Sequence record: MT995927.1
Length of the DNA stretch: 64,000 bases
Direction: 5' to 3' (one strand)
Part shown: piece after piece, positions 24,263 through 42,707 of the stretch
Position numbering within the stretch: position 1 is the stretch's first letter
Layout: the number at the start of each line of letters is the position of its first letter
Position numbers and translations under genes: made by a program
Notes under the pieces: generated by a model
Told to the model about the DNA's origin: nothing
The model's input: the letters and a program-made list of their open reading frames with translations, nothing else
Database searches by the model: none

Positions 24263-26578
24263 ATGGCCCACGGTGAAACTGGGTTATATCCATTCGACCC
24301 CAATGGAACAAATCCCCAGAACTTTATTAAAGGTGAGCGCCAAACTCTCCAGGTACCAGATGGTGATGATTATTATTTCATTATACCATTTGCTGCACCT
24401 TTCTTTGTAGATTCATTACGACTATTTAACCCACTGACCAATCAGACTTATGTAGAAGGTGTTGATTACCTTATTGGGCATTGGTTTATTGAAGCTATGG
24501 AATCGATAGGTAGACCTATCGCTGGATCTATACGTATCATGAAGCGTTCGATAAACGCTATGATTGGTATGGATTATCGTACAATAGGTGGGCAATGGGG
24601 ATTTAGTAATCAGCAGATCCTGGCTGAGCTTGCACGCAAACAGTATAACCCCTTGATTCGGTCATGGGGTGCAATTGGTCCATTACCTGCTTCTTTCCCA
24701 CCTTTAGAACACAATCAACCTATTGATTCATTAGTAGGTAGTAAAGAGATTCTTGAAGGTATCGAAGGGATTATAGAAGCTATCCGTGCTGCGGCTGCCG
24801 GTACAACTGACCAACATATTCGTGATTATAATAACCCACACAGGGTAACTAAAGCACAAGTTGGCTTGTCACTAGTTCCAAACTACGCAATGGCAAGTGA
24901 TCAACAGCATTTAGATGCTAATCGTAATGATCTATTTACGAACCCACGTGGTACATTAGCATTAGTTAATAAGTTTGCCGTAAATCCGCTTAATGCCCAC
25001 ATAGCGGCTAGGGGTAACGTACACGGTCTAACAGCAGCTGATATTAATTTAGGTAATGTTCCTAACTACCCAGCTGCAACACCAACTACTGCGGTAGACG
25101 TAACTAATGATTCGGTATTATTAACACCTTATACTGCATCTATTCTCTATAGTCAGATTGGTGATGCTTCTAGAATTAATGAACTAGAAGAGAAACTTAA
25201 TCAACATATTAGTAATGAAAATAACCCACACGTTGTAACTGCCGACCAGGTTAATGCATATACTAAAACACAAGTTGATCAACTACTGGCAGGACTAGGT
25301 GGTGGTGATGCTTCTACCTTTGGTGGATTAACACCTGAGCAATGGAAAGATGAATTCCCATCATTCGGTGATATTGAAAGGATGGCAGCCGGCTATAACG
25401 CTAACTGGGATGATGTACAATTAAAGATAGATACATTACCAGTTATTGTGGATGATACTAGTGAATATGACCGAATGGAATTAATTCAAGGTGTCACGGC
25501 AGGTTTCCATGCTTATGCTGGATTTAATAGTTGGTGGGATTGTACAATTGTCAGAGATGACTGTGTAGTTCATCCTAAATCGCCAGCTAACCCTTATGCT
25601 GTTATACCAGAGCGTTTAGGATATGCTCAGGAATCCTGGGTATCTCACCGATATGGTCAGTATTGGGTAGAGAATGGTGTAGCCAAGTCAGCATGTATCG
25701 ATGAAACTAAAGTCGATGAGATGATACCAATTCCAGTAGAATGGACTGCACCTATAGATGGAAATATTCCTTCAAGTATCTGGGCGAATAAAACATCTCT
25801 GTATATGTTAACAGGTAAGTTCATCTTTAGTTCAACAGGTGAATCAGCAATCTTTGAGCACCAAGATCTTTATCGTTGTGTTAAAGGTGGTACATCTGAA
25901 CTATTAGTACCTGCTGCTAATAAACCATGGGCTATATTTACCAATACTGAAGACACCTATCCTGGTGAAATGACAGTTGTTGTAAACATAGGTCCAGCTA
26001 GCAGTGCTGACTATGTATATACAGCTTATGGTATCCCAAGCTTCATTAGTGCTTTTAATGATTTTGTTAACAACACAATTAAACCATTGAATCATGTTAT
26101 TGATTCAATGTCAATTGGTTGCACCCACATCATCATGCATTCAATAGATCCATTAGTTGCTCCTGAAGATTATACATCTGAATCTAGTAAAGTACATGTC
26201 ATGGAAATCATCCGCAATGGTAATGATACATCCTTTATGGTTATCTCGCCATTATGGTTTGATGGACGTGGTAACGATGTAACTGCTAATGTAAATAGTA
26301 ACCCAATTGGTGGTGTATCAGGATTGTACACACATTACACAGTGATGTATGGTGATGGCCAAATCGCTTTCTTCGGAAATAACGATAATGGACAATGTGA
26401 CGTAGATGACCATGCTGGACCATATATTCAATTGGCAGCAGGGCATAATTTCACTGTGACAGTAAATACTTTGAATCAAGTCATGTTCTGGGGAGATTCA
26501 CCTGATAACTCCTTATTATGGAATGGCAGGGGTACACGTGTGAAACATATTGAACCAACTCCACCCACTGGTCCATAA
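24263..26578 (+). CDS. Baseplate/fibre protein with C-terminal beta-propeller (gp131-like)
   Basis: 771 aa; three NPHxVT repeats; C-terminal GNNDNGQ...IQLAAGHNFT blade motif. Confidence 0.8.
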   Translation: MAHGETGLYPFDPNGTNPQNFIKGERQTLQVPDGDDYYFIIPFAAPFFVDSLRLFNPLTNQTYVEGVDYLIGHWFIEAMESIGRPIAGSIRIMKRSINAMIGMDYRTIGGQWGFSNQQILAELARKQYNPLIRSWGAIGPLPASFPPLEHNQPIDSLVGSKEILEGIEGIIEAIRAAAAGTTDQHIRDYNNPHRVTKAQVGLSLVPNYAMASDQQHLDANRNDLFTNPRGTLALVNKFAVNPLNAHIAARGNVHGLTAADINLGNVPNYPAATPTTAVDVTNDSVLLTPYTASILYSQIGDASRINELEEKLNQHISNENNPHVVTADQVNAYTKTQVDQLLAGLGGGDASTFGGLTPEQWKDEFPSFGDIERMAAGYNANWDDVQLKIDTLPVIVDDTSEYDRMELIQGVTAGFHAYAGFNSWWDCTIVRDDCVVHPKSPANPYAVIPERLGYAQESWVSHRYGQYWVENGVAKSACIDETKVDEMIPIPVEWTAPIDGNIPSSIWANKTSLYMLTGKFIFSSTGESAIFEHQDLYRCVKGGTSELLVPAANKPWAIFTNTEDTYPGEMTVVVNIGPASSADYVYTAYGIPSFISAFNDFVNNTIKPLNHVIDSMSIGCTHIIMHSIDPLVAPEDYTSESSKVHVMEIIRNGNDTSFMVISPLWFDGRGNDVTANVNSNPIGGVSGLYTHYTVMYGDGQIAFFGNNDNGQCDVDDHAGPYIQLAAGHNFTVTVNTLNQVMFWGDSPDNSLLWNGRGTRVKHIEPTPPTGP

Positions 26579-26590
26579 GAGGATTTAAAA

Positions 26591-26923
26591 ATGGCAGAAG
26601 TTACACGTCAAGAGATGGATGCTCAAATAAATGCTTCTATTAGTAATCAAGGCTTATTTACTAAGGCAGTCCTTAATAAATTCATAGCCGTTATTAATAG
26701 GATCAATGGGCATATTGCAGCTAGAGGTAACCCACATAATCTGCAACCATCGGATATTGGTCTTGGTAATGTGGCTAACTATCGTCCAGCTACTAAGAAG
26801 CGTGCACAAGAAGGTTTCAATAACACTACGTACATGACTCCTAAACGGACAGATGATTATAATCGAGTGCACATATACGGTCCACTTGCGAAATTATTTA
26901 ATGACGCAGCAGACCGTCTATAA
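26591..26923 (+). CDS. Short fibre-family protein (gp132-like)
   Basis: HIAARGNPHNLQPSDIGLGNVANY repeat as in the gp131-like protein. Confidence 0.75.
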   Translation: MAEVTRQEMDAQINASISNQGLFTKAVLNKFIAVINRINGHIAARGNPHNLQPSDIGLGNVANYRPATKKRAQEGFNNTTYMTPKRTDDYNRVHIYGPLAKLFNDAADRL

Positions 26924-26940
26924 ACATCTGACCCGGCATA

Positions 26941-26967
26941 AGAGACACAGCCAAAAGCTGTGTCTCT
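26941..26967 (+). terminator. Intrinsic terminator
   Basis: AGAGACACAGC-CAAAA-GCTGTGTCTCT followed by TTTT. Confidence 0.8.
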
Positions 26968-26997
26968 TTTTGCTGTTTCAGTTAAAAGGTATTTCTT

Positions 26998-28386
26998 ATG
27001 TATAATCCTATTTTACAATTACCATTTGATCCATTAGGTACAAATCCAGATTGTTTCATTGGTAGCGAGCCTCATACTCTAGTTCAGTATCAGGGATTCG
27101 ACTATAGAATCATCAAGTTATATCATGGTGGATTCTATACAAAAGGGTTAGAAGTTTATGATGGTAAATATAATCGTTTAGTTAAAGATATTGATTATAT
27201 TGTTACTTATTATCACAAAGATGCTAGTGCGTATGTCGGTCAAGAAATATGTTCAGCAATTGTTTTCTTAAAAACACCTAGTACACCAATAGTGTATACT
27301 TCAGCTCACATGGTAGGCGGTGATCTAGCGTTTAGTTTCACAGTTATCGACGATTATATTAACTGGTGGAAAACAAATGGTAAGCCAAAGCCAAAAGATC
27401 TCGACTACACTGGTAACGAACCATATTGGAAAGACGGTGAGTTAGTTGGCGAACGATGGCATCTTGATACGTATCAGCCTTATAATAACGAGATGGAGTG
27501 GATAACACAGGCACTCATGGCTGGTGATACAAGCGGTGAAGATGAATACCGTAGTAAAGTTAAAGAGATTTATGATGAGTTCTTAAAGAAATTTAATGAT
27601 CGCCTAGAAAAACATATTCAAGATAAAGCTAATCCACACAAGATTACCCCAACTAATGTTGAACTAGGTTTAGTTAATAACTTTCCATTGGCTACTCCAG
27701 CCATTGCTCAACTAGGTCAATCTAATGCACATTATCTAACACCGCAGTTAGCATATGGCGTATTAGATGAAATAGCTATAAAACCACTTAATGCCCACAT
27801 AGCTCGCCGTGATAATCCACATAAAGTCAAAAATACGCATGTACAGTCGTATTTGAAAAGTGATTTTGATTCACGAATTACTGGTAAATATTTAAAGACT
27901 GATACAGTAGCTAATACTAATATGGTTTATTATAAACCTAAAGGGCAACCAACTGCTACTTTAATGGGTTATAGCGATCTTATTTGGTGGATGCGTAAGA
28001 ACTTTGACACAGACGTGAACTTTACAGCTGGCGATGGCCAGAGTAATGTCATCAATATAAATCGGATTGGTTCCGGGGCAATGGGACAATGGAAAGCACC
28101 ACTCCGTGGTAATGGTATTTTTACACACTTTGATCAATTAGCCACAGAGTATTCATATCCGGTTAAGTTAAAGTTTTATGCACTAGGATTACAACCATCC
28201 GTGCAAGCAGCATTAGATTTCTGTAGAACTAACTTCACTAATCCAGATGCATGGCCTATTGGATCTACTGTATTCTTCACTATTAAAGAACAGAAAATCC
28301 AGGCAGCTGGTAACGGATTGATTTTCGTTGATTATACTCCTAACTACGTGTGTTTCCGTTCACAAGGTGGCTGGGTAATTCCATAA
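26998..28386 (+). CDS. Tail fibre paralog (gp133-like)
   Basis: N-terminal LPFDPLG domain plus NPH repeats. Confidence 0.8.
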   Translation: MYNPILQLPFDPLGTNPDCFIGSEPHTLVQYQGFDYRIIKLYHGGFYTKGLEVYDGKYNRLVKDIDYIVTYYHKDASAYVGQEICSAIVFLKTPSTPIVYTSAHMVGGDLAFSFTVIDDYINWWKTNGKPKPKDLDYTGNEPYWKDGELVGERWHLDTYQPYNNEMEWITQALMAGDTSGEDEYRSKVKEIYDEFLKKFNDRLEKHIQDKANPHKITPTNVELGLVNNFPLATPAIAQLGQSNAHYLTPQLAYGVLDEIAIKPLNAHIARRDNPHKVKNTHVQSYLKSDFDSRITGKYLKTDTVANTNMVYYKPKGQPTATLMGYSDLIWWMRKNFDTDVNFTAGDGQSNVININRIGSGAMGQWKAPLRGNGIFTHFDQLATEYSYPVKLKFYALGLQPSVQAALDFCRTNFTNPDAWPIGSTVFFTIKEQKIQAAGNGLIFVDYTPNYVCFRSQGGWVIP

Positions 28387-28397
28387 GGATAGTTTAG

Positions 28398-29771
28398 ATG
28401 AATCCATTACTTTTACCTCTTCCATTTGATGAAACTGGAGAGAGTTATAGTAACCGAACAAAGGGTGAATACCATTCACTAGCAAAACAGAAAGGATTCC
28501 CCTATCGCATCATCGTGATGGATAAGGGTTACTTTTACACTAAAGGAATGGTTATCAGAGATGGTAGGCAGAATGAGTTAAATCCAGAAATGGATTATCA
28601 GTGTACTGGTATTAATCCAGAAGTAATCGAGAAGACTGGACTTGAAGCGTGTTCAGTAATTGTTATTACAAAACAAGATGTCCACGAGGATATTTACATT
28701 GATGCTCAGATGTGCGGTGGTATATACTGTAACCTTGCCCCTTCCATATCTGAGCATGCTAACGCTCTTTTAAATAATACCCGTAAACCACATTGGTCTA
28801 ATATTTTAGATATTCCTGACCAATTTAAACCTAATGGACATATGCATGCCTATTGGGAACTTTATGGTTTTACGCCTAGAGTTGTTAAGTTAAAAGAAAT
28901 AACTGACTTATTAAAGAAAAGCTCATCAGACTCATATGACTCCATTTTAGATGAGTTTAAATATCAGTTAAGTCTAATAGAAGCTGATCTTAATACAATT
29001 GAAGCACGACTTACTACACACATCAATGATACCACCACTAACCCACACCAGACACGTAAAGGGCAAGTGGCATTAGGTAATGTTTATAATGCTGGCATTG
29101 CAACTGAAACACAAGCCAAACAGCCAAATGGCGCTATCATGAATGTCTATGCTACGCCATGGTCAATGAAGTTATCAGTTGATACCAATTATACAGTTCA
29201 ATATCTGGCACACGTTAATGATGTCACCACTAACCCACACAGGGTAACGGCTGAACAATTAAATACGTATACTGTTACTCAAGCTAATATTTTACTAAAT
29301 CAAAAATTAGATAAAGGTAAAACAGCCAATACGTCTAAACTTTTATTTGGTCAAGATGTTTATAGCATGGGTGAAACAGTACGTGCTAAAATGCCTTTAA
29401 GTGTATTGACGACTGGTCGACTAGCACCTGGTAGGATTGGTAATTCAGCTACCTGGCCAGGCCGTGATTGGACATTGATGCCTAATGGTCAATGGACTCA
29501 TTTCGGTTTTATATTTAATCGCTTCCAAAAAACAGGGACGATGGTCCACTGGAATAACACCAACTTTAAATCTATTCAAGAAGCAATTGCCTTCCATAAC
29601 ACATACTTCTCAGATCCTGAACAATGGTGGCCTGGTTCGTTAGCTATTTGCCATTACGATCAAGAATTCGTGATTGGACATGGTAACGGTACAACAGCTA
29701 CTTCCTATAGGAATACTTTATTCTTACGTAAAGTGGGATCAACGTGGACCAATATAGGGGAACCGGCATAA
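28398..29771 (+). CDS. Tail fibre paralog (gp134-like)
   Basis: N-terminal LPFDETG domain plus NPH repeats. Confidence 0.8.
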   Translation: MNPLLLPLPFDETGESYSNRTKGEYHSLAKQKGFPYRIIVMDKGYFYTKGMVIRDGRQNELNPEMDYQCTGINPEVIEKTGLEACSVIVITKQDVHEDIYIDAQMCGGIYCNLAPSISEHANALLNNTRKPHWSNILDIPDQFKPNGHMHAYWELYGFTPRVVKLKEITDLLKKSSSDSYDSILDEFKYQLSLIEADLNTIEARLTTHINDTTTNPHQTRKGQVALGNVYNAGIATETQAKQPNGAIMNVYATPWSMKLSVDTNYTVQYLAHVNDVTTNPHRVTAEQLNTYTVTQANILLNQKLDKGKTANTSKLLFGQDVYSMGETVRAKMPLSVLTTGRLAPGRIGNSATWPGRDWTLMPNGQWTHFGFIFNRFQKTGTMVHWNNTNFKSIQEAIAFHNTYFSDPEQWWPGSLAICHYDQEFVIGHGNGTTATSYRNTLFLRKVGSTWTNIGEPA

Positions 29772-31162
29772 TGATTACTTTTTTACCATTAGATCTAAAA
29801 GCTAAATTGGCTTCTAATTACATTGTAGATGAGGACCACACACTCATTCAAGTTGCTAATAAAACACACCGCGTACTTATGTGTACACATGGTGGTTTTT
29901 ATACAAAGGACTTTAATCTACGTGATAAGAAGACTGGCTTATCTTTAAACAAAGATCAATATAAAACAACCTATCTTTATTCACAGTTATCTGAAATGAC
30001 TGGCTTAGAAGTAATGGGTATTGTTGTAGTAACTGATCCTAAGGTTAGTCCTAATGTCCAAGTTACATATAGAGCAGTTGGTGGTTTCTTTAGTATTTCG
30101 GCATTAGAACTTAAAGCTGTTTTTGATAAACTTGAATTAGATGAATTAAGTTTCACTTGGGATGATATTATTGGTAAACCCGATGCATATCCGCCTGCAC
30201 CTCACGGCCATGAATATTGGCAGATTTATGGCACAGATACAATGGTAACTGAATTAAACCGAATAGCACACGCTTATCGGGTCGGTAGAAGTGCCATGGA
30301 TAATGCTGCCGATGATTATTATAAAGTTTATCTCACCGATGCAAAAACTGCTGTGGATGATTATAGAGATCGAGTTACAGCACACTTAACTGATTATAAT
30401 AATCCGCATGCTGATGATCGATTCAAGTTAATTCCACCGCTTGATAAGATATCTAACTGGGGTTTTGCTACTGAGGCTGAGTCAGTTAATAGAAATGTAA
30501 ATAATAAATACATGCCAATTGGTGGTATTTATCGTATTCTTAATATTGATACATTGGCTAAACTTGCAGCACATATTAAAAACTTCAATAACCCACACGT
30601 TGTCACAGCTGACCAAGTTGGATCATATACCAAACCAGTGATGGATTCTAAAATAGCTCCATTATTAGGTGTCAATGAACAAGCTGCTAATGCGACCACT
30701 ATTGGTGCTACTACTAATAGTCAGGGTTATCCAGTTACTGGAACAGGTAAGGTATATCAGAATTTCTGGAATGATGTTCGAAAAGATATTCCAGCTGAAG
30801 AAGTAACTAGTGGCGTATTTAAATGGAATGCATTAGGTAAAGGTAATGCATCAATATTAAATGACCCTGAGAGATATTATCTAGCAAGCGATGGTACTTG
30901 GCAAGACTGGGTTGAAGCTTTTAAAGAGTGGAACAAAGATAAGATTAAAGCCATTACCTTAGGTCAGGTAAATAGTGAAGCAGAAGCATTAAACACGTTA
31001 AATACGATGTTTACAGATAATACCAAATATCCTGAAGGCACTTACGCTGTTGTAGGTGTTAGAACTAATACCCCCTTTGAAGCCTATTATTACCAGCAAT
31101 ATGTAGCAGTTAGAAATAATGGTACATGGCGTTGGATGATTCGAGCTGGAGCACTTGTATAA
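29771..31162 (+). CDS. Tail fibre paralog (gp135-like)
   Basis: Start moved to ATG 29771 (TAATG coupling); LPLDL domain plus NPH repeats. Confidence 0.8.
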   Translation: MITFLPLDLKAKLASNYIVDEDHTLIQVANKTHRVLMCTHGGFYTKDFNLRDKKTGLSLNKDQYKTTYLYSQLSEMTGLEVMGIVVVTDPKVSPNVQVTYRAVGGFFSISALELKAVFDKLELDELSFTWDDIIGKPDAYPPAPHGHEYWQIYGTDTMVTELNRIAHAYRVGRSAMDNAADDYYKVYLTDAKTAVDDYRDRVTAHLTDYNNPHADDRFKLIPPLDKISNWGFATEAESVNRNVNNKYMPIGGIYRILNIDTLAKLAAHIKNFNNPHVVTADQVGSYTKPVMDSKIAPLLGVNEQAANATTIGATTNSQGYPVTGTGKVYQNFWNDVRKDIPAEEVTSGVFKWNALGKGNASILNDPERYYLASDGTWQDWVEAFKEWNKDKIKAITLGQVNSEAEALNTLNTMFTDNTKYPEGTYAVVGVRTNTPFEAYYYQQYVAVRNNGTWRWMIRAGALV

Positions 31163-31764
31163 TGAATAATCCGTTATCACTCCAAGAACTATCTTTAGCT
31201 ACTGCGCCTACTGAAGATAAAGTAAAAGTACTATTAATGTTTAACCGTACTTCTGAGGTATTCCTACAAAGCGTAGGCTATCTACCTTTAGATGCATTCG
31301 ATGCTAAGTCACGTGAGCACACCATTTTTGTTGAAGCCGAAATGGGTACTTATGATGTAGTCGTAAGTAATACACCTGGTAAACAACCTACACTTTCCGA
31401 TTGGAAGATTGTTCCTAAAGAAGAAGCGCCACAAGTGATTACTGAAGATCACTTAAATAGTAAAGTGGCCTACAAAATTACTGAACGCTATCCAGTGACT
31501 GAGCAAATTAATATCCTTGCACGTGCAATTAAACAGCTAGCTGAAAAATATGGTCAAGAGTTAGATGAACTAGAAGAAATGCTTGATTATATTGATCTTG
31601 TTAAACGAACTAATCGCGCGCATAAGGAGGCCCTAATTGAGAGCCCAGACGTTATCTATAAATCCAGGGAAGATCTCGACGCTGAGAAAGCACATCGATA
31701 TGCAGGTGGCCTGCATGAGCTTATCGGCCCACGAAAGATCGACCAAGGACGTGTTTTCAGCTGA
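31162..31764 (+). CDS. Putative tail fibre assembly chaperone (gp136-like)
   Basis: Start moved to ATG 31162 (TAATG coupling); ITERYPVTEQINIL resembles fibre-chaperone motifs; follows the fibre genes. Confidence 0.55.
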   Translation: MNNPLSLQELSLATAPTEDKVKVLLMFNRTSEVFLQSVGYLPLDAFDAKSREHTIFVEAEMGTYDVVVSNTPGKQPTLSDWKIVPKEEAPQVITEDHLNSKVAYKITERYPVTEQINILARAIKQLAEKYGQELDELEEMLDYIDLVKRTNRAHKEALIESPDVIYKSREDLDAEKAHRYAGGLHELIGPRKIDQGRVFS

Positions 31765-32197
31765 ATTTGCAGCTGACCTTGTATCTTATCTGGATACACT
31801 GGGAGATTCCTGGTGGTTTAATCGGAAAAAAATTAATAGTATCCCAACCAAAGGTATCACTGAATGTGATTATTGGTTTTTAGGTCATAACCAAATGCCA
31901 GTGGAATTACGGGAATTACTATTTCATATTGCACCTAAGGTAGAAGGTGCTTGGTTAGGCGAAGTTCTAATCAACCGATATGAAATTGGTACAGGTATGC
32001 CTGAACACATCGACCAAGCTGTTTATCGTTACAACATGGTTATTGCATTAAATGACAATGGCGATGGTATAACGATCAATGGTGAGTTTTATCAGGATGT
32101 ACCAGGTAGGGCTACTATTTTTCCAATCCGTTCAGAGCCACATGAAGTCCCTCCAGTTAAAAATAAAAGATACGTCCTTATATATCTCTACGAGTAG
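31715..32197 (+). CDS. 2OG-Fe(II) dioxygenase, AlkB-like fold (gp137-like)
   Basis: LINRYEIGTGMPEHID (HxD), distal HEV, C-terminal R in KRYVLIYLY; start moved to ATG 31715 with AGGTG RBS. Confidence 0.75.
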   Translation: MSLSAHERSTKDVFSAEFAADLVSYLDTLGDSWWFNRKKINSIPTKGITECDYWFLGHNQMPVELRELLFHIAPKVEGAWLGEVLINRYEIGTGMPEHIDQAVYRYNMVIALNDNGDGITINGEFYQDVPGRATIFPIRSEPHEVPPVKNKRYVLIYLYE

Positions 32198-32205
32198 GGT
32201 ACAAC

Positions 32206-32694
32206 ATGGCAATTAAACTTAAGACTCTATCTAAGGCAGAACTAAAAACATTAACAAAGCTTAAAGGCGAAGTTTCATTTAGAGACTCATATGGCCACCG
32301 TATGCGAGTTGGCACTAATGGCCTTAAAGCATGTAGTGTTTATAATACTTCAAAATGGTTTAATTGGACTGCTAAACAGCGTAAAGAAATTAAACCAATT
32401 TTAGGCGAAGAACTATTTAACAAAGCATTACAAGTATGGTTTTTAGATTTCCCCAAAATAGATGGATTTCTAGATGAGATGAATTATTGGGTAGATAAAC
32501 CCGAGTCCGGTACTATTCTTGCTTGGAATATTGGACCTGATGCTAAGTTCATTTTAGATGGCGAAGAACTATTAATTGGAAAAGGTGAAGGATTAGTATT
32601 TCATCTATCCCAATTACATGAAGTAAAACGTTCCCATAATGGACAATCATGGATCTGTGTAATGGTACGTGGTGCTCCTGAAAAATTTGCTTAA
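32206..32694 (+). CDS. Putative degenerate DSBH/cupin-fold protein (gp138-like)
   Basis: C-terminal GEGLVFHLSQLHEV...WICVMV parallels the preceding gene; no clear HxD. Confidence 0.55.
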   Translation: MAIKLKTLSKAELKTLTKLKGEVSFRDSYGHRMRVGTNGLKACSVYNTSKWFNWTAKQRKEIKPILGEELFNKALQVWFLDFPKIDGFLDEMNYWVDKPESGTILAWNIGPDAKFILDGEELLIGKGEGLVFHLSQLHEVKRSHNGQSWICVMVRGAPEKFA

Positions 32695-32703
32695 CAGCAT
32701 AAA

Positions 32704-32723
32704 TCCCCTCCATGTGGAGGGGA
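32704..32723 (+). terminator. Hairpin terminator
   Basis: TCCCCTCC-ATGT-GGAGGGGA. Confidence 0.7.
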
Positions 32724-32759
32724 ACTCTTACAAATTTACTCAATAGTACAGTGTACTAA

Positions 32760-33686
<927 letters not shown>

Positions 33687-33688
33687 AT

Positions 33689-34252
33689 ATGCTTAAGCTT
33701 CCAGCGAGTGATGAGCCATTTCGGGTACTAGCATTAGACCCTGGTTCACAAAACCTCGGCATAGCTATTCTGGAAGATAAGTTGGATGGAAGTAATAAGG
33801 TGGTACGTAATGCATTTACTTGCCACCTTAAAGATACAAATCCGGCATATGCTGCCATTTCCGAGGTTCATGGTAGTAGATTCACTAGAATGCAGCAAAT
33901 GAGTGATGTGGTACTAAATATACTGCATACAGAAAAGCCACATGCAGTGATTGTAGAATCTAACTATCTTGGTAAGTTTGCCCAAAGCTTCGCTGTACTT
34001 GTAGAATGTGTAACCTATGTACATAGAGCATTATACGAGTATGATAGATTTATACCTTTATACATGATTGATCCGACCACAGTTAAGATCAATGCTGGTA
34101 TGAAAAAAGTAAAGGGCACTACTAAAGACGATGTTAAAGAAGCAATGCGCTCTCGTACTGATATCACATGGAATATCGACATAGATAGTTTAGATGACCA
34201 CTCCATGGATGCTTGTGCAATAGCTTACTACTACCTTACTAGGATTGTTTAA
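33689..34252 (+). CDS. ruvC: RuvC-like Holliday junction resolvase (gp140-like)
   Basis: VLALDPGS...G.AIL, VIVES, PTTVK, DH..DA.AIA catalytic acidic motifs. Confidence 0.85.
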   Translation: MLKLPASDEPFRVLALDPGSQNLGIAILEDKLDGSNKVVRNAFTCHLKDTNPAYAAISEVHGSRFTRMQQMSDVVLNILHTEKPHAVIVESNYLGKFAQSFAVLVECVTYVHRALYEYDRFIPLYMIDPTTVKINAGMKKVKGTTKDDVKEAMRSRTDITWNIDIDSLDDHSMDACAIAYYYLTRIV

Positions 34253-36934: not shown

Positions 36935-36954
36935 GAGAGTCCTTCGGGACTCTC
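36935..36954 (+). terminator. Hairpin terminator
   Basis: GAGAGTCC-TTCG-GGACTCTC followed by TTAT. Confidence 0.85.
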
Positions 36955-37056: not shown

Positions 37057-39426
37057 ATGGCAAATGCTACAGACAAAGGCAAGATCAGTCAACTGCCGGA
37101 TCTAGCTACTCTTAATGATAGCGAGTATATTGAATTAATTCATACCGATGCAGCTGGTCAAGTCGATAACTATAAGTTTCTGCTGTCAAAACTACAGACT
37201 GGGGCACCCGGTCTTAGTGCGTACGAGATTGCCGTTAAAAATGGTTTCCAGGGAACTGAAACCGAATGGCTTGATTCGCTTAAAGGTAAATCTTCTTATC
37301 AAATCGCAGTCGATCTAGGCTTCGTTGGTACTGAAGAAGAGTTTATAGCATCCCTTAAAGGTGATGCTGGTAAGAGTGCATATGAAGTAGCTGTGGAAAA
37401 TGGTTTCCAAGGTACTGAACAGGAATGGTTAACATCACTGCATGCAACCATGACTGCTGAACTACTACAGACACTCTTAAATCAACAAGGTTACACAGTT
37501 AAAGATGTACTGCGTGTAACTGGCAAGAATGGTGGATTATCATCCAACGCTGCTTTCCATAACTTTGCTTTCCTGTTTGATAAGCGTCTAGATCAAGACG
37601 ACTTAACTGCTAGTGATAAAGTACCTCAGCGTATGATGGAACAAGGGCGTATGGAGGCAGAAGGTTATTCTTATCTAAAGAACGCCTCTGCACCTACCAC
37701 ACAAGGTAAATTACCTGAATTACCTGAGTCTGAAATTCGTATCTATGACAATGGTGAATTCCAGATTGGTAGTTTAACTGATTACATTGCATTCAAGAAT
37801 GATGGTAACATCCGTATTGTTGAAGGCGTTGATGAAACAACTGTTGATCTTAAGAACCTTCCTAAAAATGAAGGTATTAGTGGCGGTGTATTCGTCAAAG
37901 ATGTACAAGCAACTGATCCCAGTCAGAACGTAGGTAGCATTGTGCGTACCCCCGATGGACACAGCGTGCAGTCATGCCTATCAACTACTAGTAATGTTCG
38001 GGTTATCGTTGATGCAATAACTGGACATTCTAGTTACGTACCTAGTGTTAAAATCAATAATGTAGATGCAGTTGTAACTCCTGGCGTTAATCCGCCTATG
38101 TGGATTGCTACGGCAGATATTGACCTTGGTGCACCCACTACCGAAGGTTATGCAGATATTGTTGTAGAGCACGCCGATGGCGCTAAATTCACTACTAAGG
38201 TATTAGCCGATACTCCTGCTAATATTACTAGTGCTGTATTTACTGGTGGTTATCCATTAGGTCAAACAGAACTTAAAGAAGATGACTTAGTTGCAATTAA
38301 AGTTGTTACTGATGAAAATATAGTAGCATACGAGATTGCTGACTTTGGTGCACTGAAAGAAAGTAGTGGTACTGTTGCACCTACTAAAGAACTAGAAGTT
38401 ACTGGTCTTTACGTAGCTGATCGCGGTAATACTACTAAGGCATATGGTTTCCGTGTACGTGTTCAGAAATCAACTGGATCATGGTCAGAATGGTTTACTT
38501 CCAGTGATGCTGGTTCTGAAGATAAAGTTAACACAATGCAGCTAAACGATCTTCGCCCAGTTGTTAATATTGGTCAAGTAACTTATCCGTCTGGTCAAAG
38601 TGCTATTAAAGTAGGTGAAACTGCTACTGTTGCCAATACAGTATCTAATGCTGATAGTGTAGTTTATTCCTCACCAAATGATCAGCTCACTATAACCAGT
38701 GCAAATGAAGCAGAAATTGCTAAAGTAGTTACTTATAAGTCAGGTACTTATAACGACAGTACTAATAACCTATTAATTACTGCTAAACGTGCAGCTAATG
38801 GTAGTGTAGCTACGGCTACTGCTGTTGTAGCTATTGCAAATGCGGCACCTACTGCGACGGTTACCTACCCTGCTGCTCGCCTTCGTTCAGGTGGTAACTT
38901 TGGAACCCAAGTACAAAGTCATGTCATTACTTTAACCTCTACTCAGAAACTAAGTGCAGCTCCGGCCATGAATGCGCCTGGCGGTAAGTGGGCTACTGAG
39001 GATTGGAAATCTGATGCCACTGGTAAGGTATGGACACGTGCATTACTAGTACATGACGATGATCCTAAAGGAACCTACGATTTTAACAGTGTGGTTCTAA
39101 AAGGTTTAGCTGGTGTTGAAGCTAATAGTGTAAATGGTGGTACTTATGTACTAGGTGGATTTGTATTCCGCACTCTAAGTGTGGCTGCTTGGCCGAACCG
39201 TGAAACTGATATTGGTACTGAAGTAACCAATACTGGTAAACTACGTTGCAGTAACCTATCTAAAGGTTCTACTGGTAGCTTAAACTTCACTTATAAGGCG
39301 GATGATGCAAATCAAGTTGACACCTACACCATCAAGGATGGCAATAAGTGGTATAACTGTGACTCAGCAAACGCTGTGTCCAACACCACTGGACTGATGA
39401 AAATCGAACTTGAGGAAGTAGTATAA
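37057..39426 (+). CDS. Fibre/virion appendage protein (gp145-like)
   Basis: KISQLP N-terminus; three SAYxxAxxxGFxGTExEW repeats; beta-rich C-terminal modules. Confidence 0.75.
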   Translation: MANATDKGKISQLPDLATLNDSEYIELIHTDAAGQVDNYKFLLSKLQTGAPGLSAYEIAVKNGFQGTETEWLDSLKGKSSYQIAVDLGFVGTEEEFIASLKGDAGKSAYEVAVENGFQGTEQEWLTSLHATMTAELLQTLLNQQGYTVKDVLRVTGKNGGLSSNAAFHNFAFLFDKRLDQDDLTASDKVPQRMMEQGRMEAEGYSYLKNASAPTTQGKLPELPESEIRIYDNGEFQIGSLTDYIAFKNDGNIRIVEGVDETTVDLKNLPKNEGISGGVFVKDVQATDPSQNVGSIVRTPDGHSVQSCLSTTSNVRVIVDAITGHSSYVPSVKINNVDAVVTPGVNPPMWIATADIDLGAPTTEGYADIVVEHADGAKFTTKVLADTPANITSAVFTGGYPLGQTELKEDDLVAIKVVTDENIVAYEIADFGALKESSGTVAPTKELEVTGLYVADRGNTTKAYGFRVRVQKSTGSWSEWFTSSDAGSEDKVNTMQLNDLRPVVNIGQVTYPSGQSAIKVGETATVANTVSNADSVVYSSPNDQLTITSANEAEIAKVVTYKSGTYNDSTNNLLITAKRAANGSVATATAVVAIANAAPTATVTYPAARLRSGGNFGTQVQSHVITLTSTQKLSAAPAMNAPGGKWATEDWKSDATGKVWTRALLVHDDDPKGTYDFNSVVLKGLAGVEANSVNGGTYVLGGFVFRTLSVAAWPNRETDIGTEVTNTGKLRCSNLSKGSTGSLNFTYKADDANQVDTYTIKDGNKWYNCDSANAVSNTTGLMKIELEEVV

Positions 39427-42400
39427 TGGCTTCTGCATTTGAAGATTATGTAAACGGGGAACTCCCCAAACGGGTATCATCAATTGATGAGCCCACTTCT
39501 GTAGTTAATGGACACATCCCGGTTTCTACCGGGGTGGGTCTTAATACTACTTTCGTTGATCCTGTTACTATACCTGGATTAAAGGGTGAAGATGGTCAGC
39601 CGGGTAAAGATGGCGAACAAGGCCCTCCTGGCCCAGTTGGTCCGGCTATTAACATTATCGCTAATGTTGATCTAGCAACATTCGAACAAGATATTAAACC
39701 ATTAGATACGCATAATGTCGGTGATGCTTGGTTCGTTGAAGATCGGCTATGGGTGTGGGAATCACCGCTAGGTAATGAAGACCCCCCTGTAAAAGGTCGT
39801 TGGGTTGAAACAGGTTCACTTCGTGGTCCAGATGGTACTGGTCTAGTTATCCGTGGTCGTTGGCCTAATAACTTAGAATTACCTAAGACTGAAAGTAATA
39901 AACCTGGAGATGCTTATTCATGGAATAATCAACTCTGGGCGTGGATGCTTATCTCAGGTAATAATCCGCCAGAGAATCCAACTATTGATGACTATGATTG
40001 GTTCCCAGTTACACCACAGGGTGAACGTGGACCTGAGGGCCCTGAGGGTCCGCAAGGTAAAGATGGTGAAATTGGTCCTGAAGGTCCTCAGGGTGAACCA
40101 GCAATGCCGTTTACCATTAAGGATTCACTACCATCACCAGCTGATTTACCTGATCCATCTGTAGCTAAAGAATCAGAAGCATACTTAGTTACTATGGAAG
40201 CTGGTAAACCAGAACATCTATTCATCTTTGTAAAAGGGGCATGGTCAGACCTAGGTACTTTCCAAGGCCCTGAGGGCCCACAAGGTAAACCAGGTAATAC
40301 AGGTGATCCGGGTCCCGATGGTAAACAAGGTGAACCTGGTCCACAAGGTCGTAACTTAGAAGTAGTTAAAGCAGTTGAAACTGCTGATGATCTATTAACC
40401 ACCACTGGTGTAGAACAATACCAAGGTGTTTCAGTACGTTCCACCAATACGGTTTATGTACTGACTGGCCAAGATCCGACTGTTGATATCTCATGGACAG
40501 CCATGGGTTCATTCCGTGGCCCGCAGGGCCCTGAAGGTCCGCAAGGTGAAGATGGCGAACAAGGTCTACCTGGTGAACCAGGGGCACAAGGTAAATCGGC
40601 TTTCCAAGTAGCATTGGACAATGGCTTCACTGGTACTGAGGGTGAATGGTTAATCAGTCTACATGGTAAGAACGTAGTTATTACTGGTGCTGTTGCCAAT
40701 GAGGCAGCCCTGCCGGCAGATGCTCCTGATCAGGCAGCGTACTTCACACAAGACACATCTACCTTATTTGTTAAGATAGATGGTAATTGGGTAAATAGTG
40801 GTACACATCGAGGTCCTAAAGGTGAAGATGGCGCACCTGGTAAAGACGGTGATCAGGGACCAGAAGGACCCGAGGGACCAGAAGGCCCACAAGGTCCCGC
40901 TGGTGAACCTATCCAGATCATCGCAGCGATTGACACTCCTGAAGATACCCCACCAGAAGCACTTGCCGATAACCAATGGAAAGCATATACTGTTAAGTCC
41001 ACGGGCGAAGTATTTGTTAACATGGACGGTAGTCGCTGGACTAGCATTGGTATTATGGCAGGTCCGCAAGGTAAACCGGGTGAAGGTTTAAACATTAAAG
41101 GTGTTTTAACCGATGCTTCACAACTACCAAAGAAAGACACTGATCCTGACTTAGTAACTGGTGATTCATACTGGGTTGAAACTAACGAAGGTACAATGCT
41201 CTATACTTACCAAGGTCAGGAAATTGATGGCTATATCGGCCCAATTAATCTAAATGGTGAGCAGGGTATCCAGGGTGTCGAAGGCCCACAAGGTCCTGAA
41301 GGTAAACAAGGTGGTGGTCTATTAATTATCTATGTTGGTGATGATGCTGGTAAACCAGTAGCATCTGCTGATAACGTAGGTAAAGGTATTGCCATTCGCA
41401 CCAATACTGAAGGACAAGTAGAAGTATTTGTAAGTATCGATACTGAAGGTACATTTACTTGGGAAAGCCTAGGTGTCTTAGCCATGGGTCCGCAGGGTCC
41501 TGAAGGCCCTGAGGGCAAACAAGGTGTTCCAGGTATCCCTGGTAAAACCGGTCAGAAAGGTGAACGTGGATCCTCTTGGGTAATTCTACCTGAAGGTCAA
41601 ACTGCACCCACTTCTATCGATGGTAATCGTGGTGACTGGTGTATCGACAAAACTGGTACCGTTTGGTATAAAGATGCTAACTGGGTTGTATTCTACAAAT
41701 TAATGTCAGTTCCAGTTAGTGAAGTCGATCCAGAAGATGTCGATAAGAAAATGGTTCGGTACAAACTCGGTTGGACTGAACTACCTGTTGATGAGGTGGT
41801 AGATGCTGAAGTAGGTGTCTTCTATGGTCGCCGTAAAGCAACCGCTGACGGGGCTGTTGAATGGACTGCTATTGAATTACCAACACCTGCCATTGATGCT
41901 GTACCTAGTCCAGTTGTTAATGCACAATACGTTCGTAAAGGTATTGCAGGGGGTGAAACTGAATGGGCTACCATTACATTCCCAGAAATTCCTTCAGATG
42001 TAGTACGCGATACTGCACAAGCTACTAAGCCTCAAGGTCGTGTAGCTGGTAACTGGGTTGATGTAGCACCTCTGCAAACCGATGATACTCTAATGGGTAT
42101 GCAAAATGGTGAATGGGTAGCTGTACCAGCCGCAGTTATTGGTGAAGTACCTAGTGAAGGTGCTAATGGCACTAACTATGTACGTGAGAAAACAGCTAGT
42201 GGTTCTAAATGGACACCTGTAACTATTATAGTTGATCAAGCTGATGCTACTAGTGGACAACTATTCCTACGTAATGCTGCGGCTAAATCATGGACTCTAT
42301 TCCAAGGGCCGAATAATGATGTAACCGCTGATGGTGATTGGCTACGTAGCCGTACTGGTACTAATATTACTTGGAAGAAGCTAGATAAATCATTCGATGC

Positions 42401-42707
42401 ATATAGCCTAAAATCAAGTACATTCACTGGTACAGCTTTAACTCTAACACCAGCTAACCAACAGTGCTATAGGGTTCAAACTGCTGCTAACCAAACCATT
42501 ACACTAGAGAATGGACCTGTTGATCGTATGATCACAGCTGTTCTTGTATTGCTTGGTAAGGTAGCTATGCCAACACTTTCTAGTGCAGTGTTACAATGGA
42601 ACAATGGTACTCCAGTAATAGTAGATGACCTAGGTGATACTAAAACAGTTCTTACCCTCTTATGGGATGGTACTAACTGGATAGTTTCCAAAGGTGCTGT
42701 TATTTAA
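39426..42707 (+). CDS. Collagen-like fibre protein (gp146-like)
   Basis: Multiple Gly-X-Y tracts (GPEGPQGK) alternating with globular modules; TAATG-coupled to the upstream gene. Confidence 0.85.
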   Translation: MASAFEDYVNGELPKRVSSIDEPTSVVNGHIPVSTGVGLNTTFVDPVTIPGLKGEDGQPGKDGEQGPPGPVGPAINIIANVDLATFEQDIKPLDTHNVGDAWFVEDRLWVWESPLGNEDPPVKGRWVETGSLRGPDGTGLVIRGRWPNNLELPKTESNKPGDAYSWNNQLWAWMLISGNNPPENPTIDDYDWFPVTPQGERGPEGPEGPQGKDGEIGPEGPQGEPAMPFTIKDSLPSPADLPDPSVAKESEAYLVTMEAGKPEHLFIFVKGAWSDLGTFQGPEGPQGKPGNTGDPGPDGKQGEPGPQGRNLEVVKAVETADDLLTTTGVEQYQGVSVRSTNTVYVLTGQDPTVDISWTAMGSFRGPQGPEGPQGEDGEQGLPGEPGAQGKSAFQVALDNGFTGTEGEWLISLHGKNVVITGAVANEAALPADAPDQAAYFTQDTSTLFVKIDGNWVNSGTHRGPKGEDGAPGKDGDQGPEGPEGPEGPQGPAGEPIQIIAAIDTPEDTPPEALADNQWKAYTVKSTGEVFVNMDGSRWTSIGIMAGPQGKPGEGLNIKGVLTDASQLPKKDTDPDLVTGDSYWVETNEGTMLYTYQGQEIDGYIGPINLNGEQGIQGVEGPQGPEGKQGGGLLIIYVGDDAGKPVASADNVGKGIAIRTNTEGQVEVFVSIDTEGTFTWESLGVLAMGPQGPEGPEGKQGVPGIPGKTGQKGERGSSWVILPEGQTAPTSIDGNRGDWCIDKTGTVWYKDANWVVFYKLMSVPVSEVDPEDVDKKMVRYKLGWTELPVDEVVDAEVGVFYGRRKATADGAVEWTAIELPTPAIDAVPSPVVNAQYVRKGIAGGETEWATITFPEIPSDVVRDTAQATKPQGRVAGNWVDVAPLQTDDTLMGMQNGEWVAVPAAVIGEVPSEGANGTNYVREKTASGSKWTPVTIIVDQADATSGQLFLRNAAAKSWTLFQGPNNDVTADGDWLRSRTGTNITWKKLDKSFDAYSLKSSTFTGTALTLTPANQQCYRVQTAANQTITLENGPVDRMITAVLVLLGKVAMPTLSSAVLQWNNGTPVIVDDLGDTKTVLTLLWDGTNWIVSKGAVI

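Follow-up and report, generated by a model that had tools for sequence, protein, structure and literature searches.

gp137 of phiKZ-type Pseudomonas phages is a predicted 2-oxoglutarate/Fe(II) oxygenase encoded in a conserved tail-fibre accessory cassette

The gp137 locus

Tail fibres set which bacteria a phage attacks, and they are generally treated as unmodified proteins. Here we describe a predicted 2-oxoglutarate (2OG)/Fe(II)-dependent oxygenase that is encoded next to tail-fibre genes in a 64,000-nucleotide stretch of sequence record MT995927.1 (one strand, 5′ to 3′; the whole stretch is called the window, and all positions refer to it). The window represents a Pseudomonas aeruginosa jumbo phage of the phiKZ type. 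Over bases 31000-33000 its sequence matches phages T2P, U1B, U5 and phi9_PA9 at 100% identity and KTN4 at 99.6%. According to the annotation in AF399011, the open reading frame (ORF) at 31715-32197 is PHIKZ137 (gp137), and its start position is the same in most homologues. Both peptides quoted for this ORF in a first-pass annotation, made from the sequence alone, are present in the gp137 translation. Our literature search found no study on gp137/PHIKZ137, on fibre-linked oxygenases or on phage fibre hydroxylases. The features of the gene are as follows.

31715..32197, plus strand: gp137 (PHIKZ137) coding sequence, predicted 2OG/Fe(II) oxygenase of 160 amino acids (open from ATG at 31715 to TAG at 32197; double-stranded beta-helix model; PF13640 match at E 2e-5)
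31703..31708, plus strand: AGGTGG, a Shine-Dalgarno-like hexamer before the gp137 start and within the end of gp136 (read directly from the sequence)
31973..31981, plus strand: codons of N87-R-Y89 on the first core strand, the AlkB-family-like part (N87 and Y89 invariant among close homologues)
32006..32014, plus strand: codons of H98-I-D100, predicted first two iron ligands (conservation and model)
32141..32143, plus strand: codon of H143, predicted distal iron ligand (invariant; on strand 143-145 of the model)
32168..32170, plus strand: codon of R152, presumed binder of the 2OG C5 carboxylate, nine residues past H143 (invariant; at the start of the last strand, 152-159)

gp137 has the predicted fold and active site of a 2OG/Fe(II) oxygenase

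A search of 5.8 billion proteins returned 64 gp137 clusters, nearly all of about 160 residues, and an exhaustive profile search of 1.84 billion representatives gave just 94 proteins at E <= 0.001; no relatives were found in bacterial genomes in a scan with the cassette-locus relative P0100. On the two protein searches the gp137 family is small and distinct. Residues H98, D100, H143, R152, N87 and Y89 are invariant in 26 homologues sharing 39-63% identity. Among 36 representatives, down to 19% identity, D100, H143 and R152 remain invariant and H98 is at least 90% conserved. The AlphaFold2 model built from an alignment of homologues (predicted local distance difference test, pLDDT, 91.6; predicted template-modelling score, pTM, 0.87) shows eight core strands arranged as a double-stranded beta-helix (DSBH). 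In this model H98 and D100 are located where strand 95-99 ends, strand 143-145 carries H143, and R152 opens strand 152-159, which is the canonical DSBH arrangement.

A phmmer search of gp137 against PDB sequences gave chance kinase matches only (E about 1). Comparison of the model with the PDB by Foldseek yielded 166 matches at E <= 0.001, and all 50 of the matches listed were 2OG oxygenases. The best of these were an uncharacterised Shewanella oxygenase (3dkq), the lysyl hydroxylase LH3, a Burkholderia oxygenase, PolD and the PBCV-1 collagen prolyl hydroxylase, with PHD2, Pseudomonas P4H, AspH and mimivirus L230 further among the top matches. The first-pass annotation had assigned the ORF to the 2OG/Fe(II) superfamily on the strength of an HxD...H iron triad with a distal Arg, and had named a fold other than DSBH as evidence to the contrary. 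The triad and the Arg proved to be conserved to about 20% identity and placed canonically in the model, the predicted fold is DSBH and the fold matches are 2OG oxygenases, all of which uphold the assignment. Judged by its predicted fold and ligands, gp137 is a real, intact 2OG/Fe(II) oxygenase.

The homologue in PhiPA3 (HQ630627, gene 156) is deposited as a protein of only 105 amino acids (P0057), yet tblastn aligned the full 160 residues in one piece. It looks as if the annotated start lies too far downstream and the gene is not broken.

Subfamily assignment and the nuclease label

The top Pfam match of gp137 was PF13640 (2OG-FeII_Oxy_3, prolyl-hydroxylase type; E 2e-5), whose gathering cut-off of 27 bits was just missed with 25.9 bits; the same family matched 12 of the 36 relatives at E <= 0.01. 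For the AlkB-type family PF13532 the score of 13.3 bits (E 0.1) fell far below the cut-off of 31.2 bits. Weak, sub-threshold PF13532 matches were detected in 10 of the 36 relatives, with 17.8-18.7 bits for the cassette-locus relatives P0085 and P0100. Ten relatives were also scanned singly: those above the PF13640 cut-off are marginal family members, and the sole case above the PF13532 cut-off is the marginal match P0153. The AspH-type Pfam family left mere traces in gp137. Because both curated thresholds were missed, gp137 is filed, on its sequence, under neither the prolyl-hydroxylase-type nor the AlkB-type Pfam family. Since all PDB matches lie at template-modelling (TM) scores of 0.5-0.7, the fold does not single out a subfamily; the PBCV-1 hydroxylase vCPH (5c5t) aligned with the gp137 model at E 6e-6, TM 0.55 and 14% identity, no better than did other subfamilies.

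The first-pass annotation had also pointed to a close parallel with the AlkB sequence pattern. This held for the short local motif N-x-Y...H-x-D, around which the gp137 family profile matched human ALKBH8 (E 0.008) and, weakly, ALKBH5. The likeness did not extend to the remainder of the protein: the ALKBH8 match spans only 34 residues and PF13532 is far below its threshold. In AlkB proteins the 2OG-binding arginine is followed, a few residues on, by a second one. In gp137, R152 is followed by Y, V, L, I, Y, L, Y and E, with no further basic residue and with Leu158 at the AlkB second-Arg position. The model folds the N-terminal 80 residues into one long helix, a pair of strands and another helix; TM scores of 0.49-0.60 were obtained with AlkB structures, and E. 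coli AlkB and ALKBH6 occupy ranks 37-50 of the listed Foldseek matches, below protein hydroxylases. In a rival explanation, gp137 would be an AlkB-like nucleic-acid oxygenase, removing or installing base modifications on phage or host DNA or RNA, with its place among the fibre genes being incidental. Such a role could draw on the motif, the ALKBH8 and ALKBH5 matches, the weak PF13532 matches and the presence of AlkB structures among the fold matches. The shortness of the profile match, the PF13532 score and Leu158 speak against it, as does a length of 160 residues, which leaves little room for a nucleotide-recognition lid. Moreover, a repair enzyme would not be expected to be strictly linked, in unrelated phages, to fibre genes and two proteins of the virion (see below). 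We regard this explanation as very improbable.

Databases give yet another function. The label ‘DNA endonuclease’ is attached to PHROG 2297, which gp137 matches at E 1.2e-55, and to many RefSeq and Pharokka records, and it is in this label and these product names that a nuclease function finds its backing. Against it, no nuclease family was matched by gp137 in Pfam or NCBIfam (the latter gave no match of any kind), gp137 has the fold and ligands of a 2OG oxygenase, and the record of phage Churi names the protein a 2OG-Fe(II) oxygenase. The endonuclease label is almost certainly wrong, and a widespread mis-annotation of gp137 is hereby corrected.

gp136, gp137 and gp138 form a cassette linked to fibre genes

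gp137 is flanked by two small genes.

31162..31764, plus strand: gp136, 200 amino acids, first cassette gene, its last 50 nucleotides overlapping gp137 (homologue in 60 of 60 loci; found in KTN4 virions)
32206..32694, plus strand: gp138, 162 amino acids, third cassette gene, predicted distant DSBH paralogue of gp137 without catalytic residues (hhalign; BFVD model)

Overlaps of 1 nucleotide join gp134 to gp135 and gp135 to gp136, gp136 overlaps gp137 by 50 nucleotides, and 8 nucleotides separate gp137 from gp138. With gp134 to gp138 overlapping or nearly abutting, gp137 lies within a tail-fibre gene block, as the first-pass annotation had it, and its link with fibres across lineages is stronger than is visible from the window. 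The reported overlap with a ‘fibre-chaperone-like’ gene, that is, gp136, exists, but ‘chaperone-like’ has no support in homology and gp136 is found in virions. The gene overlaps suggest late co-expression of gp137 with the fibres.

Five metagenomic places with distant gp137 relatives (25-44% identity) showed one common layout: large ORFs, then an ORF of 170-190 amino acids overlapping the start of the oxygenase, the oxygenase, and an ORF of 150-170 amino acids. Pairwise searches identified the flanking ORFs as gp136 and gp138 homologues. Iterated profiles were then applied to the 8-kb flanks of 60 loci, including 51 further IMG/VR loci. A gp136 homologue was present beside the oxygenase in every one of them and a gp138 homologue in 58, the remaining two being contig ends. 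Four loci have the gene order 136-138-137, and thus the linkage survives rearrangement. In a cultured-phage collection of 50,697 records the three families occurred in 72, 71 and 72 records, all of them Pseudomonas phages.

The cassette carriers include the jumbo nucleus-forming phages phiKZ, PhiPA3, 201phi2-1, Psa21, Phabio and Noxifer, in which the cassette stands behind the gp131-135 paralogues. In the 115-kb phage QdP_Psa3 it follows a ‘tail fiber protein’, in the T4-like, 175-kb phage Milchi it lies between a ‘tail collar fiber protein’ and neck genes, with 4-nucleotide overlaps among the three genes, and on a metagenomic contig with an integrase and a Rep3 gene it follows baseplate genes and a short fibre gene. 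The cassette genes overlap or abut by a few bases in the QdP_Psa3 and Milchi lineages too. PHROG scans classified the ORFs upstream of the cassette in other lineages as fibre, collar-fibre or baseplate proteins. The trio stands behind a fibre gene in each locus that was inspected, and, going by gene content and order, at least four unrelated lineages of Pseudomonas phages have the cassette locked to fibre genes. It is this place directly behind a fibre gene, conserved across lineages, that makes it a tail-fibre accessory cassette; no match of gp136, gp137 or gp138 to a described tail-fibre assembly or chaperone family was obtained in Pfam, PHROG, NCBIfam or the PDB.

In Milchi (L064, 5844-7938) the cassette is just ahead of the head-tail adaptor (neck) genes, and the 181-amino-acid ‘tail collar fiber protein’ consists of little beyond a C-terminal domain (residues 98-180) that is shared with other fibres and described below. 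In L035 (1648-10477) the cassette sits inside a set of four paralogous fibre genes with a common N-terminal domain, three upstream and one downstream.

Downstream of the cassette in the window, a GC-rich 8-bp hairpin (32704-32733) lies 10 nucleotides past the gp138 stop. Together with its tail it fits the published phiKZ intrinsic-terminator motif on the minus strand only, and the neighbouring genes are all on the plus strand; the hairpin may stop antisense transcription or act bidirectionally. We considered hairpins as brackets of gp133-gp138 as a single transcription unit and rejected this, as the one after gp138 fits the terminator motif on the minus strand only. Farther on, gp140 (33689-34252, 187 amino acids) lies amid baseplate and lysis genes. 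One record calls it a RuvC-like Holliday junction resolvase, and its homologue in L009 gave a weak Pfam RuvC match.

The fibres next to the cassette share a C-terminal domain

The fibre genes upstream of the cassette encode paralogues, three of which end in the same domain.

26998..28386, plus strand: gp133, fibre paralogue, C-terminal domain at 28027-28383 (profile; listed as a fibre component in the phiKZ structure)
28398..29771, plus strand: gp134, fibre paralogue, C-terminal domain at 29397-29768 (profile; phiKZ structure)
29771..31162, plus strand: gp135, fibre paralogue immediately upstream of the cassette, C-terminal domain at 30794-31159 (profile; phiKZ structure)

In the published phiKZ structure gp131, gp133, gp134 and gp135 are assigned to the fibre base (PMC13250141). 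A profile made from the last 120 residues of the paralogues, which are about 450 amino acids long, recognised the domain at the extreme C-terminus of the ORF just upstream of the cassette in L006, L037, L046, L055-L058, QdP_Psa3 and Milchi. A large metagenomic group with fibres of 620-720 amino acids matched as well (hhalign probability 94.9%, E 4.5e-8). When 13 diverse copies were aligned, the Asn of a G-N-G turn (N439 of gp133) was invariant, and the Gly of a P-x-G motif and the C-terminal Trp were at least 90% conserved. The profile found no relative among PDB sequences. As far as profiles reveal it, the conserved unit is a fibre with the shared C-terminal domain followed by gp136, gp137 and gp138.

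Each jumbo-phage fibre paralogue also contains 1-3 N-P-H motifs (24263-31162 in the window, covering gp131 and gp133-135; loci L003-L034 were compared), and the pre-cassette fibres of other lineages contain none. The N-P-H motifs of gp131-135 were rejected as a target of gp137, being absent from the fibres of other cassette-carrying lineages.

gp138 is a predicted paralogue of gp137 without catalytic residues

Word-based homologue searches returned 1 protein for gp138 and 3 for gp136. For gp136 no Pfam or PDB relative was found in profile searches, and its model, built from 4 sequences, was poor (pLDDT 53.6). BLASTP gave no match between gp137 and gp138, and the kinship of the two was seen with profiles and structure only. 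Comparison of the two families by hhalign gave a probability of 89.5% (E 1.9e-6, 133 columns), and the BFVD model of PhiPA3 gp157, the gp138 homologue, superimposed on the gp137 model at TM 0.69. Several gp138 relatives gave weak cupin matches. In gp138 sequences the position of His98 is mostly Trp, that of Asp100 is variable and that of Arg152 is mostly Gln. On this comparison gp137 has a distant paralogue in gp138, from which the catalytic residues have disappeared. As the same residues are kept in gp137, we argue that gp137 uses them.

Two metagenomic proteins combine elements of both families. P0081 (156 amino acids) starts with about 40 residues of the gp138 family, and its remainder is a gp137-type core with all catalytic residues. 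It looks like a natural chimera, which could be a recombinant, a deletion fusion in the 136-138-137 order or an assembly artefact. P0139 (362 amino acids), a marginal relative, has tandem DSBH domains with an H-x-D in each, a fused counterpart of the gp137/gp138 gene pair.

The collagen-like protein gp146 as a proposed substrate

The first-pass annotation had suggested that the oxygenase hydroxylates virion fibres, for example at X-Pro-Gly sites of a collagen-like protein encoded downstream.

39426..42707, plus strand: gp146, collagen-like, substrate proposed in the first-pass annotation (Gly-X-Y content; unsupported as a conserved partner)

The collagen-like character of gp146 was borne out: we counted 7 Gly-X-Y runs with 64 triplets, 12 Pro residues in the Y position and 11 G-x-P-G sites. 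This composition, the presence of the viral hydroxylases PBCV-1 vCPH and mimivirus L230 among the fold matches and the prolyl-hydroxylase type of PF13640 would all suit a collagen-type prolyl hydroxylase acting on gp146 and perhaps on other fibres. The distribution of collagen-like genes does not. Of about 60 loci, only 3 have such an ORF at a distance of up to 8 kb from the cassette, and the complete QdP_Psa3 genome, which has the cassette, contains no convincing collagen-like gene; its two Gly-X-Y runs in all are one of 5 triplets inside a large tail protein and one of 12 triplets on the strand opposite an annotated gene. In addition, vCPH (TM 0.55) is no closer to gp137 than are unrelated subfamilies, and gp146 is 7 kb away from gp137, past the lysis genes and a terminator-like hairpin (36935-36954). 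We consider a collagen-type hydroxylase improbable, and the proposal of gp146 X-Pro-Gly sites as the target is not supported. gp146 may be a substrate in phiKZ, though nothing singles it out. Judged by co-occurrence, gp137 has its conserved partners in gp136, gp138 and the C-terminal domain of the fibres, and collagen is not one of them.

Virion composition and transposon insertions

Published mass spectrometry of KTN4 virions identified 111 proteins (PMC4908380). Among them were gp171, the gp136 homologue (6 peptides, 42% coverage), and gp173, the gp138 homologue (3 peptides, 22% coverage); gp172, the homologue of gp137, was not (PMC4908380). Transposon-insertion sequencing (TnSeq) of phiKZ has also been published, with one unique insertion per 42 bp genome-wide and a warning by its authors of polar effects (PMC12676376). 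In its Table S2, PHIKZ137 has 577 reads at 2 sites, and PHIKZ132-136 and PHIKZ138-140 have zero; in the untrimmed table the values are 604 reads at 8 sites for PHIKZ137 and 0-16 reads for PHIKZ132-136 and PHIKZ138-140 (PMC12676376). Since PHIKZ137 tolerates insertions and its neighbours are without them, gp137 is dispensable on strain PAO1 in rich medium at 37°C. The neighbours appear to be needed for growth under these conditions.

These data allow two further explanations to be weighed. In the first, gp137 would work with gp138 as an assembly factor, either a fibre-folding chaperone or a device for metal delivery, and its iron site would serve for binding only. The cassette sits at the position of tail-fibre assembly genes in P2- and T4-like layouts, gp138 represents a non-catalytic use of the fold in the same cassette, and absence from virions is a trait that gp137 shares with many chaperones. 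Nevertheless, the triad and Arg152, whose sole known role in the superfamily is 2OG binding, are kept to 19% identity, and exactly these residues have been lost by gp138, which is free of catalysis. An essential chaperone, furthermore, should not tolerate insertions. We find an assembly factor unlikely, though worth keeping in mind. In the second explanation, gp137 would act on a host protein or a small molecule (e.g. a surface-polysaccharide precursor or a translation factor) and travel with the fibres as a host adaptation. All 72 cultured phages with the gene infect Pseudomonas, the top folds include 3dkq, the pseudomonal iron uptake factor C (9qn4, 9ghl) and the EF-Tu-hydroxylating Pseudomonas P4H, and gp137 is dispensable on PAO1. 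Such a role, however, does not account for the constant company of gp136, a dead paralogue and one fibre C-terminal domain, or for the gene overlaps of a few bases that suggest coupled synthesis. We judge it rather unlikely.

Proposed role of gp137

We put about even confidence in the reading that gp137 works in the cytoplasm as a protein oxygenase and has the fibre module as its target. gp137 would be an active Fe(II)/2OG oxygenase and the enzyme of a mobile tail-fibre accessory cassette of three genes. It would be produced alongside the fibre proteins in the cytoplasm, which offers Fe(II), 2OG and O2, and would stay there without being built into the virion. Probably it binds or works with gp138, its catalytically dead paralogue. 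Ahead of fibre assembly or in the course of it, gp137 would oxidise, most likely hydroxylate, a side chain of a fibre-module protein; candidate substrates are the C-terminal domain common to gp133, gp134 and gp135, or gp136, or gp138. The modification may be beneficial under conditions other than those tested. We infer catalysis by gp137, the kind of its substrate, a gp137-gp138 complex and an effect on fibre stability or adsorption.

A more specific version can be offered tentatively. Here the oxygenase gp137, scaffolded by the virion-bound dead paralogue gp138, would hydroxylate the receptor-binding fibre end of a mobile fibre-tip module. Candidate sites, both within the shared C-terminal domain, would then be the Asn that is invariant in the G-N-G turn and the P-x-G motif's conserved Pro.

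Several points weigh against a protein oxygenase of the fibre module. The gp137 model matches protein hydroxylases, AlkB-type enzymes and small-molecule oxygenases alike at TM 0.5-0.7, and members of the family match PF13640 as well as PF13532 below threshold. What gene linkage shows is that the genes share a role; it does not identify a substrate. In one lineage, L007, and in this one only, no fibre C-terminal domain was detectable upstream of the cassette. No hydroxylatable residue is invariant in gp136 or gp138, and the turn may keep its invariant Asn for structural reasons alone. Insertions in the gene are tolerated, and therefore plaque formation on PAO1 at 37°C does not require any modification. 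There is no report of a modified residue. The phiKZ structural atlas mentions neither gp136, gp137, gp138, gp145 and gp146 nor hydroxylation, and its distal fibre is unmodelled (PMC13250141).

If hydroxylation of the fibre tip is true, bacteriophage tail fibres would have their first dedicated system of enzymatic post-translational modification, and fibre stability or receptor recognition would be tuned under conditions not met in the laboratory. A conserved, selected enzyme tied to fibre genes, together with a dead copy found in virions, points to an undescribed layer of fibre biology. The places to look in virion mass-spectrometry or cryo-EM (cryogenic electron microscopy) data are the C-terminal domains of gp133, gp134 and gp135, as well as gp136 and gp138. 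Our analysis also delimits two more families, both uncharacterised, and a C-terminal domain of the fibres, all belonging together with gp137.

Comparison with known systems

Protein hydroxylases of prolyl, lysyl and asparaginyl type (PHD2, Pseudomonas P4H, PBCV-1 vCPH, LH3, L230 and AspH) have in common with gp137 the DSBH fold, the H-x-D...H triad and a basic residue at position +9, and they are among its best structure matches (E 1e-5 to 6e-7, TM 0.55-0.69). Unlike them, gp137 with its 160 amino acids is without extra substrate-binding loops or domains and stays below the PF13640 cut-off; no known substrate motif is conserved near it, and its genomic partner is the fibre cassette, not collagen. 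With the AlkB family gp137 shares the N-x-Y strand followed by G-x-x-x-x-x-H-x-D and the weak PF13532 matches among its relatives, whereas the local extent of the match, the missing second arginine after R152, the lower fold rank and the fibre context set it apart.

Tpa1, Ofd1 and OGFOD1 are tandem-DSBH prolyl hydroxylases in which an active DSBH is paired with an inactive one. Their likeness to the adjacent genes gp137 and gp138 is one of architecture only: gp137 and gp138 are separate polypeptides, gp138 is in the virion, and none of the three enzymes is among the 50 listed fold matches. The genes of gp38/gp57A in T4 and of Tfa in Mu, P2 and lambda are tail-fibre assembly or adhesin genes located behind fibre genes. 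The cassette resembles them in that its small genes stand directly behind a fibre gene and move with a fibre C-terminal domain between phages. It differs in that the cassette proteins have no Pfam or PHROG sequence match to such families, and we know of no oxygenase in the T4 gp38/gp57A or Tfa systems. Finally, the 2OG-Fe(II) oxygenases of cyanophages and giant viruses are, like gp137, small viral DSBH proteins (150-250 amino acids) with similar fold scores, yet they share only 13-24% identity with it and have no known tie to a fibre cassette, which in the Pseudomonas phages is the constant companion of gp137.

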